Assembly: GCF_044704955.1 (NCBI RefSeq)
Contig: NC_091990.1
Span: 177,506,001-177,570,000, forward strand
Length of the DNA stretch: 64,000 nucleotides
Source of the DNA: Pristiophorus japonicus
Taxonomy: Eukaryota
Direction: 5' to 3'
Shown here: one piece after another, positions 7,046 to 36,976 of the stretch
Position numbering within the stretch: the stretch's first letter is position 1
Layout: each line of letters begins with the position of its first letter
The notes under the pieces: model-generated
Seen by the model: the letters and a program-made list of their open reading frames with translations, nothing else
Told to the model about the DNA's origin: nothing
Database searches by the model: none
Program-made: the position numbers and the translations under genes

Positions 7046-7213
7046 CTTCATCATTCTTTGATGTTGGAATACCTCCTTGTTCCGCAGTATTTTGAGCATC
7101 AGTGTTTTTCTGTTTTGCCTTATTTCCATCCATATTTTTTTTTGTGTCCTCTAACTTCGAATCTGTATTCGAACACAGAAAAGAACTGTCAGCTGCAATA
7201 TTTTTAATGCTTT
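7046..7213 (-). CDS. Repeated exon C2' (168 nt, phase 1-1): ESIKNIAADSSFLCSNTDSKLEDTKKNMDGNKAKQKNTDAQNTAEQGGIPTSKNDE
   Basis: Acceptor tttcttgtctcag|AAAGC, donor GAAG|gtaata, open frame. Confidence 0.72.
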
Positions 7214-8851: not shown

Positions 8852-9019
8852 CTTCATCATGCTTTGATGTTGGAATACTGCCTTGTGCCACAGTATTTTG
8901 AGTGTCATTGTGTACATGGTTTGCCTTATTTCCATCAAAATTTCCCTTTGTGTCCTCCATCTTCGACTCTGTACTCGAACACAGAAAGGAATTGTCAGCC
9001 GCAATATTTTTAACGCTTT
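8852..9019 (-). CDS. Repeated exon C1' (168 nt, phase 1-1): ESVKNIAADNSFLCSSTESKMEDTKGNFDGNKANHVHNDTQNTVAQGSIPTSKHDE
   Basis: Acceptor ccttccctcag|AAAGC, donor GAAG|gtaata; length and frame are conserved across copies. Confidence 0.7.
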
Positions 9020-10687
9020 CTGAGGGAAGGCCCCTCAACCCATTCAGACAATCTGAATTTTTGCTCCGAAGTCCTGCAGTACTGCTGCACCAGAGGTGAT
9101 GAGAAAAGCGGACCCTAAATCCGTCTGAGAATATGACATTTTGCCATTAGGTTAGATACATGTCACTCAATCTGCAGAAGTGATGGATTGATTTTCGACA
9201 ATAAAAAATATTATTTAAAACACAGAACAGTGAAACTTGTGCATGACAAAATCATTAATTCTGCAATAATGTTTAAACACAGGATCGTCAGTATTTTCCA
9301 CAAGCCCTTCACTTTACGCATCAATTAACGAAAAGATTGCATCAGTGAGATTAGTGCAAACCTTTTGTGCAAGATAATAGAAATATTACCTTCGCGGACA
9401 TTAAATTGATAAAGGGAAGCACAGAGCGGTAGAATAAATAAAGTACTCCAAGGGAGACCCAAATTCAGAGAGCATGAGCCAATGAAGCAATAAAGTGTCT
9501 TTACGAAATAAAACGAGACATTCAGCACAGAGATAAGAAAGAAACCGCTATCAGCTAAATGGGAAGGGACTGTCAGTGATACCCTCTCCCTGGTAATTGG
9601 ACTATAGGATGTGTAAAAGATGATTGACACCAGGGATCCAACAGTCCATCGAAATAAAGTATAAAGATGGGTGACCGAGAAGTGTAAGCAGGCATCTAGG
9701 GCCGGAGGTTTCCTCTAGGTGGACTAATGCTGGCTAAATAGCCTAACACCTTGCTCAAATCTTAACCTCTGAAGTGGATCAATGCTTTTACTAACCTAAC
9801 ACCTCCAACAGCTCAGCTCGAAAGACAACCCTGCAGAAGTGACCCCTGTCGCAGGCTGCAGGGATCCACCAATTCGAGACTAGCACTCTGTCTCGCCATG
9901 CGTTCATCCGTCTGTCTATCAGACTGTCTGGGACTTCGTTCCGCTAGTTTAACTCCGTGTAGTTCGCTCTCAACTGTCCAGTGTTGTATGTCTATTATTC
10001 CTATCTTAACTGTATGTAGTATGTGATTAGGCTTTAACACTGTAGCTCTTGAATAAAATACCTTGCAAATCCTAAGACCCTGTGGGTATCTGTATGTGAC
10101 CTGTGATCCTATTCTTGCACAAGGGATCTTTGAAGTATTGGGCTTTCAGCCAATATTTACATTAGCCCCTTAGTTTATATTTCAAGGCAAGAATGCATCT
10201 GATTGGACACGAGATGGTAGTAGGCTTCTCTCGCTGCCCTGAATTTACCTCCATCAACTAGCTTCAAATAATATTGGCGAATTCGTACAACTTGGATATT
10301 GAACTGCCCCCGTCGTACCAACACACTACCTTATTGTGGTCCAATCATTGTACAAATACTGTACTTTGATGTAAGTGGGGTTCTCACAAGAAAATATCAT
10401 GTATTTCTGAATTTGAGAAAAGAGGAGATTCATCGCATCTGAATATGATGCCGACCGTGACAATGCATCTTTCCATCAATAATGTACTGGGCTGCCAGTC
10501 GAGATAGATGTTCAAGTTCTGGAATGGGACTTCAACACACTACCTTCTGACTCAGAGACAAGTTTGCTGAATGATGTAGCTAATTGTTACAGGAAGTTTT
10601 CAATTAATAATAAAGCAGAGCCAGGTTTGTACCTGTGTTAGTTTACAGTATTCAGTCTATCGCGTTATTACATACATAACACACTAT

Positions 10688-11875
10688 AACAGAACTTCCA
10701 TTTTGTTCTTTCCTCTCCTACCCCTTTCCCTGCTCCACTTGCTTAAAAACCTGTTACATTTCTAACTTTTTCCAGTTCTGACAAAAGCTCATCGACCTGA
10801 AACGTTAACTCTGTTTCTATCTCCACAGATGCTGCCATACCTGCTGAGTATTTCCAGCATTTTCTGTTGTTCATTTAGATTTCCAGCGACAGCAGTATTT
10901 TGCTTTTTTATTAACAATAATTACATTGCTAAAAGGGCACTTGCACTATTAATAACCAGATTTAACTTTCTGATATGACTTTAACAGGCAATTAATGCGT
11001 AAATGCAGGAACCTCATGAAATTCATGTGGTAGTTAAGGACAGGCTGCCGTTTATGTGAACCTAACGGCAAATTGTCCAGCAACTTGTGTTGATTTGCAA
11101 TATACGGGGTATCTTGTTACCCACTGAACCTGCTGGACGATTTGCTCATTATGTGTCGTTCACATGCCATTACTTTTTCAGCAAGTTCCAGCTAATTATT
11201 TCAAGCTATCTTTATCTTGGTGCCACGATTTGCAGCCAAAGGTTTTCAGCATCATGTGTGCAGGGATTTGTGTTGTGTATAAAATGCTGAAATTACCTGC
11301 TGTAACCTTCAGTCGTGTAGTTTTAGTACAAACTTTCTCAGTTGTGTCCTGTTTAACTTCAATGATTAGCTCAGCGCCATCGTCCTTGGATACATCAGGA
11401 CACAGGGTAATGTCGCAGGGTATTCTGAAATTCTTTTCAGCAGTACGTTGTAATTCTGGCACCTCAGCAGTGAAGGAGTCATCTTTCGTGCAGGAATGTG
11501 ATATACTTGTGAGGGGAATAGATACTTTATTTGGTCCTGACCAGCTCGCTACTGGAATTTGCCAGTGAAATAGCTTCTTTGTTTCCTGCTCCCCTTTCCT
11601 CTTCAAGGATGTAACAATGTTCACCGTCTCTCGAAGGAACAGAGTAACTTCCCACTTCAGTTGAACTTTCTCATTATGTTTGATTTTATCCGGTTTTGTG
11701 ATATCACTAATTGTAGGAGGATCTACAACAGAAAGCAAAACAATGTGAAATAAACTTTATGTTCCAACTCACTCATGTACATCCTTGTTCAGAGATGATG
11801 TACAAACTGAATAGCAATGTTCCAAAATGTGTATCATTGCAGAGGATTGCGGCATTATGCATCGCCATGGAATCA
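10688..11875. repeat. Segmental duplicate of ~14008-15205 (Penelope end, intron and Ig-like exon)
   Basis: Colinear similarity from ACAGAACTTCCATTTTGTTCT through the exon to TTATGCATCG.CATGG. Confidence 0.92.
11297..11722 (-). CDS. Atypical Ig C-like domain exon B2 (426 nt, phase 1-1)
   Basis: Acceptor ctttctgttgtag|ATCCT, donor GCAG|gtaatt; paralogue of B1 with the same length and an open frame. Confidence 0.8.
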
Positions 11876-12588
11876 AACAATTAATCTCGCCCTGAAATAT
11901 AAAATTTCATTAACCTCGCTTCCAATTTCCACCCTTCCCTCACCTTCACATGGTCCATCTCCAACTCTTTCCTTCCATTCCTAGACTACTCTGTTTCTAT
12001 ATCTGGGGATGGGCTATTGACAAGCATTTACTATAAACCCACTGATGCCCACAGCTACTTGGATTACACTTCCTTCCACCCCGCTTGCTGTAAGGACTCC
12101 ATTCCATTCTCCCAGTTTCTCCGGTTCCGTCGCATCTGTTCTGACGATGCCACCTTCCATACTGATACTTTCGATAAGTCTTCCTTTTTCCGCAACCGAA
12201 GATTCCCCTCTCCTGTGGTTCACATAGCTCCCGACCATGTCCATTCTATTTCCTGCACTTCTGCTCTCACCCCTTCCCCTCCCTTCCAGAACCAAGATTG
12301 GGTTCACCTTGTTCTCACCTTTCATCCCACCAGCCAACACATTCAATGGATCATCCTCTGTCATTTCCGCCACATCCAGCGTGATCCCACCACCAAACAT
12401 CTTCCCCTCCCCTCCCCTTTCAGCATTCTGAAGGGATTGCTCCCTCCATGACACCCTGGTTCACTCCTCAATCACCCCCAAAACCCTCACCCCTTCCCTT
12501 TCCACGGCACCTTCCCATGAAAGCACAGGAGATGCAACACCTGCCCTTTTATCTCCTCCCTTCCCACTGTCGAGGCCCCCAAACACTC

Positions 12589-12760
12589 ATAAGAACATAA
12601 GAAATAGAAACAGGAGTAGGCCATACAGCCCCTCGAGCCGGCTCCGCCATTCAATAAATCATGGCTGATCTGATCATGGACTCAGCTCCACTTCCCCGCC
12701 CGCACCCCATAACCCCTTATCGTTTAAGAAATTGTGTATTTCTGTCATAAATTTATTTGA
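12589..12760 (-). mobile_element. CR1 LINE 3'-end fragment nested in the Penelope element
   Basis: Same 3' UTR (ataagaacataagaaatag...gagcc.gctccgccattcaa) as the LINE at 16569. Confidence 0.8.
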
Positions 12761-13142
12761 AACAGTGATTTATTTGTGCTTCTTTCAATTTAGTAAACTG
12801 TATTCGCTGCTCATGATCTCTCTACATTGAGGAGACCAAATGCAAATTGAGTGACCAGTTTGTAGAACAGTTCCATTCAGTCCGAAAGCACGACCCCGAG
12901 TTTCCGGTTGTCTGTCACTTTCATTCTCCGCTCCACTCTCACTCTGATCTCTCTGTCCTTGGCCTCTTACATTGTTCAAATGAAGCTCAATGTAAGCTCG
13001 AGGAACAGCACCTCATCTTTCATTTAGGCACTTTAATGCCTTCTGGACTCAACATCGAGTTCTGATCGTAACCTATTTTTTTCTCTTGTTTCTGTTTTTT
13101 TCTCTCATTTCCATGACAGCTGCTGATGATTCCACTATTTTC

Positions 13143-13902
13143 CATACCTCGGGAGGCTCTTATCAACAAGAGCAGACATTGACGGCGAGATTCAACACCG
13201 CCTTCAGTGCGCCAGTGCAGCCTTCAGCTGCCTGAGGAAAAGAGTGCTTGAAGACCAGGCCCTCAAATCTGCCACCAAGCTCATGGTCTGCAGCGCTGTA
13301 GTAATACCCGCCCTACTTTATGGCTCAGAGACATGGGCCATGTACAGTAGGCACCTCAAATCGCGGGAGAAATACCACCAACGATGTCTCAGCAATATCC
13401 TACAAATCCCCTGGGAGGACAGACACACCAATGTTAGCGTCCTCGACAGGCAACATCCCTAGCTTTGAAGCACTGACCACACTTGATCAGCTCCGCTGGG
13501 CAGACCACATAGTTCGCATGCCAGACACAAGATCCCCAAAGCAATCGCTCTACTCGGAAGTCCTCCACAGCAAAGGAGCCAAAGATGGGCAGAGGAATCG
13601 TTACAAAGACACCCTCAAAGCCTCCCTGCTAAAGTGCAACATTCCCACTGACACCTGGGAGTCCCTGGCCAAAGACCGCCCTAAGTGGAGGAAGAGCATC
13701 CGAGAGCGCTGTGCACCTTGAGTCTCATCGCCGAGAGCATGCAGAAATCAAGCGCAGGCAGCGGAAAGAGCATCCGGAAAACCTGTCCCACCCACACTTT
13801 CCCTCGGGGACTGTGATTCTCGTATTGGACTGATCAGCCACCTAAGGACTCATTTTAAGAGGGGAAGCAAGTCTTCCTCGATTCCGAGGGACTACCTATG
13901 AT
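13143..13902 (+). mobile_element. RTE-clade LINE 3' fragment nested in the Penelope element
   Basis: YLG..LS..ADID.EI, LLYGSETW, QLRWADHIVRMPDTR and RYKDTLK motifs; 3' end GGAAGCAAGTC.TCCTCG.TTC.GAGGGAC..CCTATGAT. Confidence 0.88.
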
Positions 13903-14620
13903 AATCTAGACTCATCTTTTGTGTCTTAACTTGCCCAATTACCATCTCCTTTTGCCTTGCACCATCATCCCTTTTGTCTCTTAATCTCTCCTGCCTTCCA
14001 CCCTATCACAGAACTTCCATTTTGTTCTTGCCTCCCCTCCCCCTTTCCCTGCCCCACTTGCTGACAAACCTGTTACATCTCTAACTTTTTCCAGTTCTGA
14101 CAAAAGCTCATTGACCTGAAACGTTAACGCTGTTTCTTTCTCCACAGATGCTGCCTGACCTGCTGGGTATTTCCAGCATTTTCTGTTATTTCAGATTTCC
14201 AGCAACCGCAGTATTTTGCTTTTTTATTAACAATAATTACATTGTTAAAAGGGTACTTGCACTACTAATGACCGGATTTAACTTTTTGATGCGAATTTAA
14301 CATGCAATTAATGTGTAAATGCAGAAACCTCATGATACTCATGGGGTAGTTAGGGCAAGATGCCGTTTATGTGAAGCTAACGGCAAATTGTCCAGCAACT
14401 TGTGTTGATTCGCAATACATGGGGCATCTCGTTATCCACTGAACCTGCTGGACAATTTGCTCATTAATAACGGTGTGTGTCGTTCACATGCCATTACTTT
14501 TTCAGCAAGTTCCAGTCAATTATTTGAAGCTATCTTTATGTTGGTGCCATGATTTCCAGCCGAAGCTTTTCACCATCATGTGTGCATGGGCTTGTGTTGT
14601 GTACAAAATGCTGAAATTAC

Positions 14621-15046
14621 CTGCTGTAACGTTCAGTACTGCACTTTTAGTACAAATTTTCTCAGGAGCGTCATGTTTAACTTCAATGATTAGCTCTGCG
14701 CCATCATCCTTGGATACATCAGGACACAGGGTAAAGTTGCAGGGTATGCTGAAATTCCCTTCAAAGGTATGTTGTAATTTTGGCACCTCAGCAGTGAAGG
14801 AATTATCTTCCTTGCAGGAACCTGTTTCATTTGTGAGGGGAATAGATAAATTAGTTGTGTCCGACAAGCTCTCTACTGGAACTCGCCAGTGAAATAGCTT
14901 CTTTGTTTCCTGCTCCCCTTTCCTCTTCAAGGATGTAACAATGTTCACCATCTCTCGACGGAGCAGAGTGACTTCCCACTTCAGATGGATTTTCTCATTG
15001 TGTTTGATTTCATCCGGTTTCATGATATCGCTAATTGTAGGAAGAT
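14621..15046 (-). CDS. Atypical Ig C-like domain exon B1 (426 nt, phase 1-1)
   Basis: Acceptor ttttctgttgtag|ATCTT, donor GCAG|gtaatt, 142 open codons. LKWEVT and LCPDVSKDDGAELIIEVKH align by eye with VRCDVT and IQPTVNDDGDKYTCVVRH of the C1 exon. Confidence 0.8.
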
Positions 15047-16259
15047 CTACAACAGAAAACAAAACAATGTGAAATAAACTTTATGTTCCAACTCACTCAT
15101 GTACATCCTTGTTCAGAGATGATGTACAAACTGAATAGCAATGTTCCAAAATGTGTGTTCCAAAATTGCAGAGGATTGCAGCCTTATGCATCGTCATGGT
15201 GTCAAATTGCACAATGAATCATCTGTAAATGACAATACAGATTCTACCGTACAAAGCACATCCATGTGGTTCCACAATTAGAAACTGCCCTTTCCACAAA
15301 ATAAAAAAGTTAATACCACAGAGCCCCAATTTTCTGAGACCAGCCAAATCGATGTAGTTCCCTGTGGTCTGTGGCTCAGGCACATCTGAGGCAGCATTGT
15401 GGAGGATAGGCTTCACCAAATTTAAAGAGTCAATGGCCCCGATCTTTACTGGGGAGGCATTTCCAAACAGTGAGGGGGGAGAGGGCTGCAGGGGAGGAGT
15501 AGTATTCAGATGTCCTGGTTTCCCTGATCGCTATGGAGTTTAAACAGGTTCCCCGCCTGAAATCCAGCCTGATTGACAGGTTTGGCTCCTCGTTTGATGG
15601 GGAACGCTGCAGAAGAGGCCACAGTCCTGGAGCATTTAAATTTCATGCTGCAAGTGGTAGGGATCATGAGTGGGGATGGGGTATAGAGTAGTTTAAGGAA
15701 GTCGGGGTTGATGGCGGAGGTTGGAGAGAGATTGGAGGCAGAGATTCAGTGTCAGAGAGAGATGGCAGAGTTGCGGAGAGATTGGAGGGAGAGATGGGCG
15801 GTTGGGGGACAGAATTGTGGGGGAGTCGATGATCACCAAGAGGGGAGTTTTGATCCTATTTGTGTCAGGCGGCATTGTGGAGGTTTGAGGGAGCGTTGTT
15901 TATAAGTTAGATTGTTGGGACTTGAGGAAACACTTCAGTTCCTCTTGGCCCAGGAGCAGCACTGTAAAAGGTGATGGATTTGGCTCTAATCATCTCCTTT
16001 TACCTGCCGGTTTTCCCGAGTCCCCGGAAACCCGGCCAATTATGGTTAAAAATAGAAATCCTATTAAAATGTACGCACAATCCTCCTTGAAAGGTTTCAA
16101 CGACCCACCAGCCTCCCAAGAGCGGATTGGTCGCCCGCCCCTCGTCCTGCTTGTGTAAAAGCTCGGGAGTGGACGGGTTTGACGCGGGTTGGGTTCCTGG
16201 TTCAGCCTTTTAATGTTTAAACATCCCATTTGAATCAAACCCACCCATTGTTGTGGCTT

Positions 16260-29080: not shown

Positions 29081-29729
29081 TTAGTTTCTGTTTCACCGCA
29101 AGGGGGTATCTCACTGGATACTAAACGGCCTCTTTCCTTTCTCCAGGACACAGAGCTTCCTGCAGATATTTCCGATGTTGCACTGATCACGAAGTATATT
29201 CAAACTGGGTGAAACTAATTCTGACCACTCTGTACTTGCTCCATCGCGCTTCACACCTGGTAATTCTGGTCATAAGCACAACCGGCATTTGTTCTCCTGC
29301 AGGTCGGGTTTCCATGAGCTGGGGGAGGGAGGGGTGGATTTTGTGCATTCAAAGCCATAGGATTTTCAGCTGATGGCATGCCTGTTGAAAGGCACTGATT
29401 TCTGGACCAAGGACTTTGTCTTTACTTGCTAAGAAACTGCTTAGTTCCAGGAAACCTTCCATTAATTGGGCTTATATGGTGTGCCAACATTTGAAACTTT
29501 GAATCTGGAGTATTAAGTTTGGAATGTCTCTCTCCCATTCAATCCATTGTGAAGTTATCTGTATGCTCACTTTTGATTATATGACTGAGTGTGTTCAAAG
29601 TGCACTGATAAGAATGGAAATCTTACAGTTCACATAACATTCTGTTAATGAAGTACCCTGTACCTCTTTTAGATTGAAAATAGCTGTTGTCAAGGAGCGG
29701 TCTGCCAGTGACATCTTCACTTTCCTTCA

Positions 29730-30620
29730 GTTTTTACATAGGATTACATAGGATATATGGCACAGACACACATCCAGTCTGTCCATCTTTCCCTGATCGG
29801 TATAGCCTCGCATTTCTGGTATCATCCTTGTAAATCTTTTTTGCACGCTCTCCCGTGCCTCTATATCTTTTTAATAATACGGTGATCAGAACTGTACACA
29901 GTACTCTAAATGTGGTCTAAACAAGGTTCGATACAGGTTTAGCACAACTTCCCTACTTTTCAATTGTATACTCTAGAAATAAACCCTGGTGCTTGGTTTG
30001 CTTTTTTTTATGGCTTCACTAACCTGTGTTGCAACTTTTAGTGATTTGTGAATTTGTGCTCCGAGATCTCGTTGTTCCTCTACCCCACCTAGACTCTCAC
30101 CCTCCAAGTAATAAGTGATCTCCCTATTCTTACTACCAAAATGTAATACCTAACATTTATCTGTGTTGATGTACATTTGTCAATTATATGCCCATTCTGC
30201 AAGTTTATTAATGTCCTCCTGTAATTTGTTGCAGTCCTCCTCGGTATTGGCTATCCTCCCACCGCTCCCCGCAATTTAGTGTCATCCGCAAATTGTGTTT
30301 TTGATTCCAAAGTCTAAATTGTTAATATAAATTGTGAACAACAGTGGTCCCAGTACTGATCCTTGTGGAATACCACGACCCACCTTCTGCCATCTTTTAT
30401 CCCATTTCTCCGCTTTTTGTCTTGAAGACAGTTCACTATCCATTCTGCTTCTTGTCCCCAGACTCCGCAATCTCTGATCTTGTTCATCAATCTATTATGG
30501 GGTACCTTATCGAAGACCTTTTGAAAATCTAGATAAATTATATCCACTGCATTGCCATTGTCTCTCTGTTACCCCTTCAAAAACTTCAATGAGGTTTGTT
30601 AAGCAAGACTTTCCCTTTTG
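29730..30620 (-). mobile_element. Older CR1-type LINE fragment with candidate TSD TCCTTCA
   Basis: IYLDFQKVFDKVPH and PQGSVLGPLLF motifs; TCCTTCA at 29723-29729 and 30621-30627. Confidence 0.82.
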
Positions 30621-34132: not shown

Positions 34133-36976
34133 CTAGAAAGAACGATATGCTTTGATATAGCACCTTTCACAACCACCGGATGTCCCAAAGCATTTTACAG
34201 CCAATGAAGTACTCTTTTCAAGTGTAGCCACTGTTGTAATGTTGAAAACCCGGCAGCCAATTTGCGCACAGCAAGCTCCCACACACAGAAATGTGATAAT
34301 AACCAGATAATCTGTTTAGTGATGTTGGTTGAGGGATAAATGTTGGCCAGGACACTGGAGATAACTCCCTCCCCTGCTCTTCTTCGAAATTGTGCCATAA
34401 TATATTTTACGTCCACCTGAGAGAGCACCTAAGCTTAACATCTCAACTGAAAGACAACTCTGACAATTCTGCACTCTCTCAGTACTGCACTGGAGTGTCA
34501 GTTTAGATTTTTGTGCTTCAGTCTCTGTAGTGAGACTAGAATAGAATGTCAATGTCAAGAGTTCAAGAAATTAAACATTTTATAATTGAATTAAGAATTA
34601 ACCATTACCTTACATCATCGATATATTATTAAAATTGGTATGTCCTGGCATCTTTCTATTCCAAAGACCTTTGTCAACAGTACCTATGAGGTTTGCATTG
34701 TTAATTGTGTCCACATCATTCTTTAATCATTCACTGCCGGCAAGGCCAGCATTTATTGCACAACCCTAATTGCCCTCGAGAAGGTGATGGTGAGCTGCCT
34801 TCTTGAATATACTGAATTACTTTCTGGGTCATTTCAGAGGGCAGTTTAGAGTCAACAATATTGCCCTGGGTCTGGAGTTATATATAGCCCAGACCGGGTA
34901 AGGGTGACAGATTTCCTTCCCTAAAATACATGATTGAACCAGATGCATTTTTACGACAATCCAGTAGTTTCATAGTGATCATTACTAATATTAGCTTTTT
35001 GTTCCAGATTTATTTATTTGAATTTAAATTCCCCAGTTGTCATGGTGTGATTTGAACTCATGTCTCTAAATCCTGCATAATGGATTGAAGCTCGTGGTTT
35101 TATCCTCCAGGTCTTCAGTGAAGCGAATTAATTTCAGCCAAATAGCTTTGGTGGTGTCGCACTTGTATTCTGCTAACTGCTTTTCCAGGTTCAAGCTACA
35201 TATTAAAGACTCTACATATGAAATACCGTCCATATCTGCCAGTGAAGTCAAGGCTTCCCGTTTCCAGCTGACAGACCCAACTTTAACACCGGCCCATAAT
35301 AGTTAATCACCATTTTAACTGATATCTTGTAAGAGCCAATTCAATTAAAATTGTCTCACTTTTTTCACTGCCCAAGTGTAATGAACCAGAAGCTAAGTGC
35401 TGATTGTGAATCTTCAAATACAAAATGACCTGATCAATATTAATAATTACTTCAAAACAATTCAGATATATTTTCTCTGTTTTACTTGTGTTGAATTTGC
35501 AGAATATTAGCTGAAAATAAAGTGTTATTGTTTAAAACAACAAAGTTCGCAGCAGAAACACAAGAGTTGGGTAGATAACAATCAGAGTAATTTCTACAAA
35601 CCAGAAAAGAGGCTTGTGATGAAAGGATTACTAGGACTGCAATGTCACCAATAATTAACATAATGAGGCCAGTTAATGTTCGTCAAAATAATTGTTAGAG
35701 ACAAAAGCTATCCACAAATTGTCCCACACCTTACGTGTAGAAATGTTTCCCAACTTCACTCCTGAAAGGCTTGACTCTAATTTTTAGACTATGTCCCCAC
35801 GATCTAGACTCCCCTACCAGTAGAAATAGTTTTACTATTAAAGTTTATACATCATTTTTAAAAATAGTTCACAGATCTATCCTATTGGACTCCAGGTATA
35901 ATTCTAATAAATCTACGCTGCACACCATCAAAGTTCAATGTATAATTTCTAATGTGTGGTGCCCAGAACTGCTCACAGTACTCCAGGGCTCTGTATAGCT
36001 GTGGCATAACTTCTAACCCTTTGTATTCTAGTCTTCCCGATATAAAGGCCAGCATTCCATTACACTTTTTGATTATTTTCTGTCCCTGTCCATGACATTT
36101 TAATGATCTATGTACATGGACACCCAAGTCACTTTGGACCTCCACGGTTTATGGCTTTTCAGTATTTAGAAAGTAATCTGATCTATCCTTTTTAGGTCCA
36201 AAGTGGATGACTACACATTTGCCTACATTGAAATCCATTTGCCACATTTTTGCAAATTCGCTTAATCTATTAATAACTCTTTATAATTTTATGCTGCTAT
36301 CTACAGTGCTTTTAATGTCACCTATCTTTGTGTCATCAGCAAACTTGTATATGTGGCTTTCTATCCCATCATCTAAGTCGTTAATAAATATGGTGAATAG
36401 TTGACGTCGTATCCTGTACATTATCCCTACTCATATCCTGTCCATTATCCCTACTCTCTGTCTCATGCCGCTTACCAATTTCCTAACCAGGTCAATAATT
36501 TGCATTCAATTCCAAGAGCTTCAACTTTAGCGAACAGTCGCTTCTAAGGGACTGTATCATAATATATAAATTTTGGCCGAAATAAGGGATTGGTCAAAAC
36601 GGGATATTATTACAAAAACAAAAATTCGAGATTAGAATTGAAACACAAATAGTGTATAGGAACACACAAAATAAGAACCATTGCATCCGGTTCCATTCTT
36701 ATTGCAGCCAGTGGTGGGATTCCACCTCACTGAGATGGGAACTTCCAGGTTGCCTCTTTTTCTTCTTGTATTACATTGACATTGACTGTGAGTGGAAGCA
36801 CCAAATTGGAGTCAATTTAGACCATATTAAATTTGGATACACTAGTCTCTTTGAATTTGGAGAATGAAAACTTCCCCCTTCGGATCTAAAGCCTACGTTG
36901 ACCTGAAGGACGGACGACTGAAGATCTCGAATGAAAAGTGAAAAGTATTGTGTGATACCAATGGCTAATGGCTTAC

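Follow-up and report, generated by a model that had tools for sequence, protein, structure and literature searches.

Tandem C1-derived immunoglobulin domains without the canonical disulphide in the probable cytoplasmic tail of a B7-H6/B7-H3-like protein of Pristiophorus japonicus

Overview

Analysis of 64,000 nucleotides (nt) of the Pristiophorus japonicus genome (RefSeq assembly GCF_044704955.1, contig NC_091990.1, positions 177,506,001 to 177,570,000; hereafter the window, numbered from its first letter) points to a B7-family gene, closest to B7-H6 and B7-H3, that probably encodes a type I membrane protein with tandem disulphide-free immunoglobulin (Ig) domains of C1 ancestry in its tail, most likely on the cytosolic side. 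The gene lies on the minus strand, and the two domains are encoded by exon B (14621..15046) and exon A (11297..11722), each 426 nt or 142 codons long and in phase 1-1, downstream of the transmembrane exon (52679..52578). B7-family ligands are usually viewed as having two Ig domains outside the cell and a short or signalling tail, and C1-set domains are regarded as a hallmark of the extracellular proteins of adaptive immunity, i.e. antibodies, T-cell receptors, and major histocompatibility complex molecules.

Sequence ancestry of the tail domain

The derivation of the tail domain from C1-set domains is shown at the sequence level by profile-profile comparison. An hhalign alignment of 17 tail sequences of the Trp type with the C1 domains from the ectodomains of those proteins reached 96.5% probability (E 7.5e-10, 104 columns), while the same subfamily aligned with the V domains of these proteins at 4%, confirming the C1 origin that a preliminary description of this DNA had proposed from the letters alone. 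In the hhalign register, W23 of LKWEVT corresponds to the B-strand Cys of VRCDVT, T37 of NIVTSLKRK to the C-strand Trp, and I120 of ELIIEVKH to the F-strand Cys of KYTCVVRH, with an insert of approximately 33 residues between strands C' and D. The loss of the C-strand Trp and the replacement of the two Cys by Trp and Ile, read by eye in the preliminary description, were thus recovered in the same register. Furthermore, at 142 codons the tail exon exceeds the C1 exon of the window (107) by exactly 35, again as described.

The family alignment forms a graded series. Distant members retain textbook C1 motifs (L-T-C-x-I-x-G-F-x-P, I-x-I-x-W, and Y-x-C-x-V-x-H), and the window copies read LKWEVTLLRR, NIVT, and ELIIEVKH at the corresponding positions. 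Both copies have Trp and Ile at the B- and F-strand positions of the disulphide, and the F-strand Cys is missing in 30 of the 32 family members; the C-strand Trp, Thr37 in the window copies, is retained by some distant members. The Pfam C1-set model matches homologous tail domains in the relatives P0006 (8.6e-12), P0009, and P0037. Applied to exons A and B, Pfam gave no C1-set match even at an E-value of 10 and nothing above threshold. Matches of copy A to PH_29 (E 0.038) and CxC7 (E 0.1) were rejected, being below threshold and absent from copy B. The tail domain of the window gene is consequently a C1 derivative that has none of the defining C1 features, namely the disulphide, the C-strand Trp, a Pfam score, and the seven-strand topology.

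The peptides of exons A and B are 73% identical without gaps, and their DNA is 86.8% identical. Four non-canonical Cys (77, 102, 107, and 131) are invariant between the copies, as previously noted, but conservation across the family extends only to C102 (27/32), with C77 present in 13 of the 17 sequences of the cartilaginous-fish subgroup.

Predicted structure

A deep alignment for the fold model was assembled from whole proteins. With 34 sequences, AlphaFold returned a mean predicted local distance difference test score (pLDDT) of 93.8 and a predicted template modelling score (pTM) of 0.87, with nine strands including C' and a C''-like strand; with two sequences only, the pLDDT was 73. A Foldseek search with the model found Ig-type domains only (E ~2e-4). 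Comparison by VIA-align to antibody V domains gave a Z score of 12.1 and a root-mean-square deviation (rmsd) of 2.5 A over 116 residues, and a structural search independent of Foldseek placed the T-cell receptor delta V domain on top (Z 11.9), followed by MPZ (myelin P0), CD8, and CAR D1. The matches to solved Ig domains in these comparisons spanned Z scores of 11.5-12.1 and rmsd values of 2.4-2.8 A over 110-116 residues, and titin Z1Z2 was also among the structural matches (Z 10.4).

The model shows an Ig fold. Its predicted shape is a nine-strand, V-like sandwich rather than the seven-strand C1 arrangement (A B E D / C F G), because the insert supplies the extra strands. The C1-type beta-sandwich anticipated earlier was therefore correct as to the Ig sandwich and incorrect as to the seven-strand shape.

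Selection between the two tail exons

Exons B and A lie within two copies of a duplicated segment, the upstream copy at 13999..15206 and the downstream copy at 10680..11877, which are 88.7% identical and differ by eight gap openings, all outside the exons. Each exon is preceded by a polypyrimidine tract and AG, is followed by GTAAT, and contains zero stops. The earlier claim of two exons with intact reading frames and splice sites downstream of the transmembrane segment is borne out by the coordinates, the AG/GT sites, and the exon order.

Recent duplicates might nevertheless be unspliced, one or both exons being decaying pseudo-exons that remain open by chance. The averages over the two copies have this appearance: the overall ratio of nonsynonymous to synonymous substitution rates (dN/dS) is 1.18, which looks neutral and counts against a functional tail, the differences are spread over the three codon positions as 21/18/17, and the exons are no more alike (86.8%) than their flanks (88.7%). 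A candidate linker exon at 29.7 kb, described below, has no acceptor. The distribution of the changes speaks against decay. Across 38 framework codons (33-53 and 107-123), which span the C-C' hairpin, the E-F loop, and strand F, there are 0 nonsynonymous and 2 synonymous differences (P = 2e-5 against an intron divergence of 0.113), and since synonymous sites have changed as fast as neutral ones, gene conversion does not explain the pattern. The insert between C' and D (codons 55-82) has 17.5 nonsynonymous and 2.5 synonymous differences (dN 0.34; P = 6e-4, uncorrected for the 14 segments) and changes roughly three times as fast as the intron. This sequence comparison shows a mosaic, with both copies under selection since the duplication, a frozen C-C'-F framework, and a fast insert, indicating that the copies are functional rather than duplication debris. 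In addition, the exons are free of stops and indels, both splice sites are retained in both copies, and homologous predicted proteins carry 1 to 8 tandem copies of the domain. Decay into pseudo-exons is thus considered very unlikely.

Membrane topology

The transmembrane exon (SRDHSYAAIIISVLVLICIALGFGIYIWRNHQK; 52578..52679, minus strand, 102 nt, phase 1-1) was recognised in a hydrophobicity scan, is bounded by AG and GTAAG sites, and matches the anchor of P0002. Directly after the anchor the predicted protein reads WRNHQK. In homologues the corresponding basic flanks include WKKKCKG/IWKKKCKG, YNKYFKK, YNKYFKKVPPKLTEI, and LWKKCLRKG. In each of the 28 homologues, full or partial, in which an anchor is detectable, the tail domain comes after it, and 27 of these have a single anchor with the basic flank next, the exception being Staurois P0030. 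A single anchor is found in all cartilaginous-fish, coelacanth, reedfish, and newt homologues and in most of those from frogs. The domain usually begins 8-12 residues past the basic flank in distant paralogues and bony-vertebrate homologues, while the closest relatives have longer linkers. Furthermore, the UniProt entry V9K7L7 from Callorhinchus (P0047), whose accession series we take to derive from transcript data, combines a signal peptide, the anchor, and the tail domain in a single chain.

The exon order in the window and these homologues show the location of the tail domain after the anchor, as the preliminary description had placed it for this gene; the arrangement is the rule in a family rather than the oddity of one gene. 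According to the positive-inside rule, a basic flank lies on the cytosolic side of the membrane. Together with the signal peptide and the N-terminal position of the disulphide-bearing V and C1 domains, this topology makes a cytosolic tail domain most likely. A second transmembrane segment, named beforehand as evidence that would point the other way, was not found in the window: two hydrophobic reading frames at 38629 and 35682 were considered as a second membrane helix and rejected, each having a stop directly upstream and no AG, and thus not being exons.

Several observations weigh against a cytosolic location, and most of them can be gathered into the alternative that the tail domains are partly extracellular. 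All exons are in phase 1-1, so that skipping of the 102-nt anchor exon would preserve the reading frame and yield a secreted V-C1-tail-Ig isoform, in which the tail domains would be lumenal and could be glycosylated. An arrangement of this kind is predicted in P0016, an older catshark model (Scyliorhinus torazame) that passes from C1 directly into the tail domain without an anchor. Five N-x-S/T sequons occur in copy B, and long paralogues retain the Cys pair in their post-anchor C1-set domains, which is unexpected in a reducing compartment. Loss of the disulphide is also known from extracellular Ig domains, e.g. CD2 domain 1 and the CEACAM N domains. Finally, three ranid frog homologues (P0062 and P0069 from Aquarana and P0030 from Staurois) stand apart from all other members in having 2-4 hydrophobic segments between C1 and the tail Ig domain, and may differ from them in topology.

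Against these points, P0016 comes from an older automatic annotation in which short exons are easily missed, and apart from it every model with both the ectodomain C1 and the tail includes the anchor. The remaining matches without an anchor are either fragments truncated at the N-terminus or two unrelated proteins, P0027 and P0034. The sequons are not conserved by position, at most 6 of 32 sequences sharing a column in the tail domain compared with 10/24 and 13/26 in the ectodomain, and copy A has none. Within the tail domain N-x-S/T is no commoner than D-x-S/T or Q-x-S/T, yet it is above the shuffled expectation, as it is in the ectodomain. Extracellular use of the domains is accordingly judged unlikely, and the cytosolic placement is retained as the preferred reading.

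Gene identity and exon organisation

Homology searches were made exon by exon. Upstream of the anchor, the window contains an IgV exon (62078..62413, minus strand, 336 nt, phase 1-1; Pfam V-set 7.1e-08) and an IgC1 exon (54797..55117, minus strand, 321 nt or 107 codons, phase 1-1; Pfam C1-set 1.5e-12), the latter with the canonical Cys-Trp-Cys; splice sites were read for both. Among solved sequences, the nearest to the V exon were CD276 (2.4e-14) and NCR3LG1 (2.3e-12), and NCR3LG1 was among the top matches of the C1 exon. The V and C1 exons match the NCR3LG1 solved sequences 6yjp, 4zso, and 3pv6 at 2e-12 and 8e-10. Since CD276 (B7-H3) scores slightly better than NCR3LG1 for the V exon, orthology to NCR3LG1 is tentative. 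The V, C1, and anchor exons are ordered on one strand in the B7 layout, with a signal peptide seen in homologues, suggesting by sequence similarity a B7-family type I membrane protein whose nearest relatives are B7-H6 and B7-H3. The exon for the leader was not found in the window. In the V-C1 intron, a minisatellite with a 19-nt unit repeated about 100 times occupies 58002-59946, and runs of N are present at 48-49.6 kb.

We infer that the anchor, exon B, and exon A are joined in one mRNA. The 37-kb, transposon-rich gap between the anchor exon and exon B would be compatible with a separate downstream gene, in which case the joined database models would be gene-prediction fusions. However, searches of the window found no second V, C1, leader, or anchor, and tblastn with the catshark, horn shark, and sevengill proteins recovered one V, one C1, one anchor, and two tail exons, in order. 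The same order recurs in more than 20 species, the domain lies within about 10 residues of the anchor in most distant paralogues and bony-vertebrate homologues, and the single chain of V9K7L7 joins signal peptide, anchor, and tail domain. A separate gene is, on these grounds, extremely unlikely. Retrotransposon remains with reverse-transcriptase-like reading frames fill the intron between the two tail exons (11878-13998), and similar retroelements occupy much of the 37 kb.

Further candidate tail sequence lies around exons A and B. A candidate acidic linker exon (KLKESEDVTGRPLLDNSYFQSKR; 29664..29733, minus strand) was picked up by a tblastn match with P0008 linkers (E 2e-4 to 2e-3) and is similar to the segments found ahead of the tail domain in other sharks. 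Its donor is good, but TAA lies in frame directly upstream and no acceptor AG is visible; the exon may be dead. At 34957-35010 and 40910-40963 (minus strand), within a 3-kb triplicated unit, weak matches (NLEQKA..NISND..ETTGL) to the C-terminal repeats of a sevengill shark protein were observed, which are probably more tail exons between the anchor and exon B. Beyond exon A, the tail is extended by hydrophilic exons of 168 nt on the minus strand in phase 1-1 (8852..9019, 7046-7213, and 2074-2241), which lie in a 1.8-kb tandem repeat; the first of these is bounded by AG and GT. The gene probably ends beyond the start of the window.

Distribution among vertebrates

A HMMER search of 1.84 billion representatives with a cut-off of E<=1e-3 yielded 38 cluster representatives, 12 of them at E<=1e-30. 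One of the 38 (P0034) is a bacterial Kre9/Big_7 protein and was set aside as a chance match. Fusions to TRIM or pyrin did not occur among the 38, a search aimed at them not having been made. A word search with exon B found no relative within the length range it covers, beyond which full-length relatives fall. The family was found in sharks (Heterodontus, Scyliorhinus, Stegostoma, Heptranchias, and Cetorhinus), in rays, skates, and sawfish (Mobula, Hemitrygon, Rhinoraja, Amblyraja, Narcine, and Pristis), and in the chimaera Callorhinchus, the coelacanth Latimeria, the reedfish Erpetoichthys, the newt Lissotriton, and six frog genera. Nearly all of these proteins are named "uncharacterized protein", and one is named NCR3LG1-like (NCBI). 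The best match of exon A is to Heptranchias (66%). Identity to Heterodontus is approximately 58% for the tail domain, compared with 43% for V and 45% for C1. A group of paralogues (P0018, P0019, P0020, P0023, and P0031) has 4-5 canonical C1-set domains, with Cys-Trp-Cys kept, beyond the anchor. Judged by these sequences, a disulphide-free Ig domain beyond the anchor appears to be the rule of an old family and not a peculiarity of the window gene. Literature searches turned up no account of Ig domains in the tail of a B7-H6-type protein, although an earlier mention may exist.

Proposed origin and function

In its descent from the C1-set type, the tail domain gave up the disulphide between strands B and F together with the Trp of strand C (Cys to Trp, Trp to Thr, and Cys to Ile) and gained the residues between C' and D that turn it into a nine-strand, V-like sandwich. 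Under the reading considered probable here, the protein would run from signal peptide through IgV, IgC1, and one transmembrane helix with its basic flank to acidic disordered linkers, the tail Ig domains, and hydrophilic repeats. The tail domain may then be a folded module for protein binding or self-association that couples the ligand part outside the cell to partners inside, with the conserved C-C'-F face as the putative binding surface and the variable insert tuning the binding. Such a role, drawn by analogy to the butyrophilin B30.2 domain, is put forward with low confidence.

A more specific version, which we regard as quite unlikely, makes the tail domain a recognition module inside the cell. 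Positive selection would diversify its C'-D insert from one tandem copy to the next, and the domain would bind cytosolic ligands such as stress or pathogen products and signal outward through the ectodomain to receptors of the natural killer (NK) cell type. This would amount to inside-out signalling comparable to that of butyrophilin B30.2, with an antibody-type domain as the module. The broader reading of a cytosolic C1 derivative would in itself mean that a family kept from chimaeras to frogs has put 1-8 tandem copies of a disulphide-free domain, descended from its own C1, on the cytoplasmic side of the membrane, a new use of this domain type and a handle on how ancient NK-ligand-like molecules communicate with the cell interior.

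Comparison with known systems

Compared with the Ig C1-set (PF07654), the tail domain has profile-profile homology over its whole length; it retains the D-x-G-A-x-L motif and a strand F ending in x-V-x-H, and in relatives also the G-F-x-P-like B-C turn. It differs in having neither the B-F disulphide nor the C-strand Trp, in its roughly 33 extra residues, and in its nine-stranded, V-like model. Human B7-H6 (NCR3LG1, the NKp30 ligand) has the same type I order of IgV, IgC1, and one anchor. Its tail contains a gag-like stretch with an immunoreceptor tyrosine-based inhibitory motif (ITIM) and SH2- and SH3-binding motifs, and differs from that of the window gene in having no Ig domain.

Within the family, the paralogues Callorhinchus LOC103174895 and Latimeria LOC102345720 share the layout, and their first tail domain is of the disulphide-free type. 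These paralogues continue with 4-5 canonical C1-set domains, whereas the window gene has only the derived type; its subgroup is further set apart from them by Trp at the B-strand position and by long acidic linkers.

The I-set Ig domains of titin, obscurin, and myosin-binding protein C are likewise cytosolic sandwiches without a disulphide. They differ in being I-set domains not derived from C1, in having no B7-family membrane tether, and in serving the muscle cytoskeleton. In possible mode of action the closest match is found among the butyrophilins (e.g. BTN3A1), which combine a B7-related IgV-IgC ectodomain and one anchor with a folded cytosolic beta-sandwich able to link the two sides of the membrane. 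The butyrophilin module, B30.2 (PRY-SPRY), is unrelated to Ig in sequence, while the tail module of the window gene derives from the protein's own C1-type domain and has been repeated by exon duplication.

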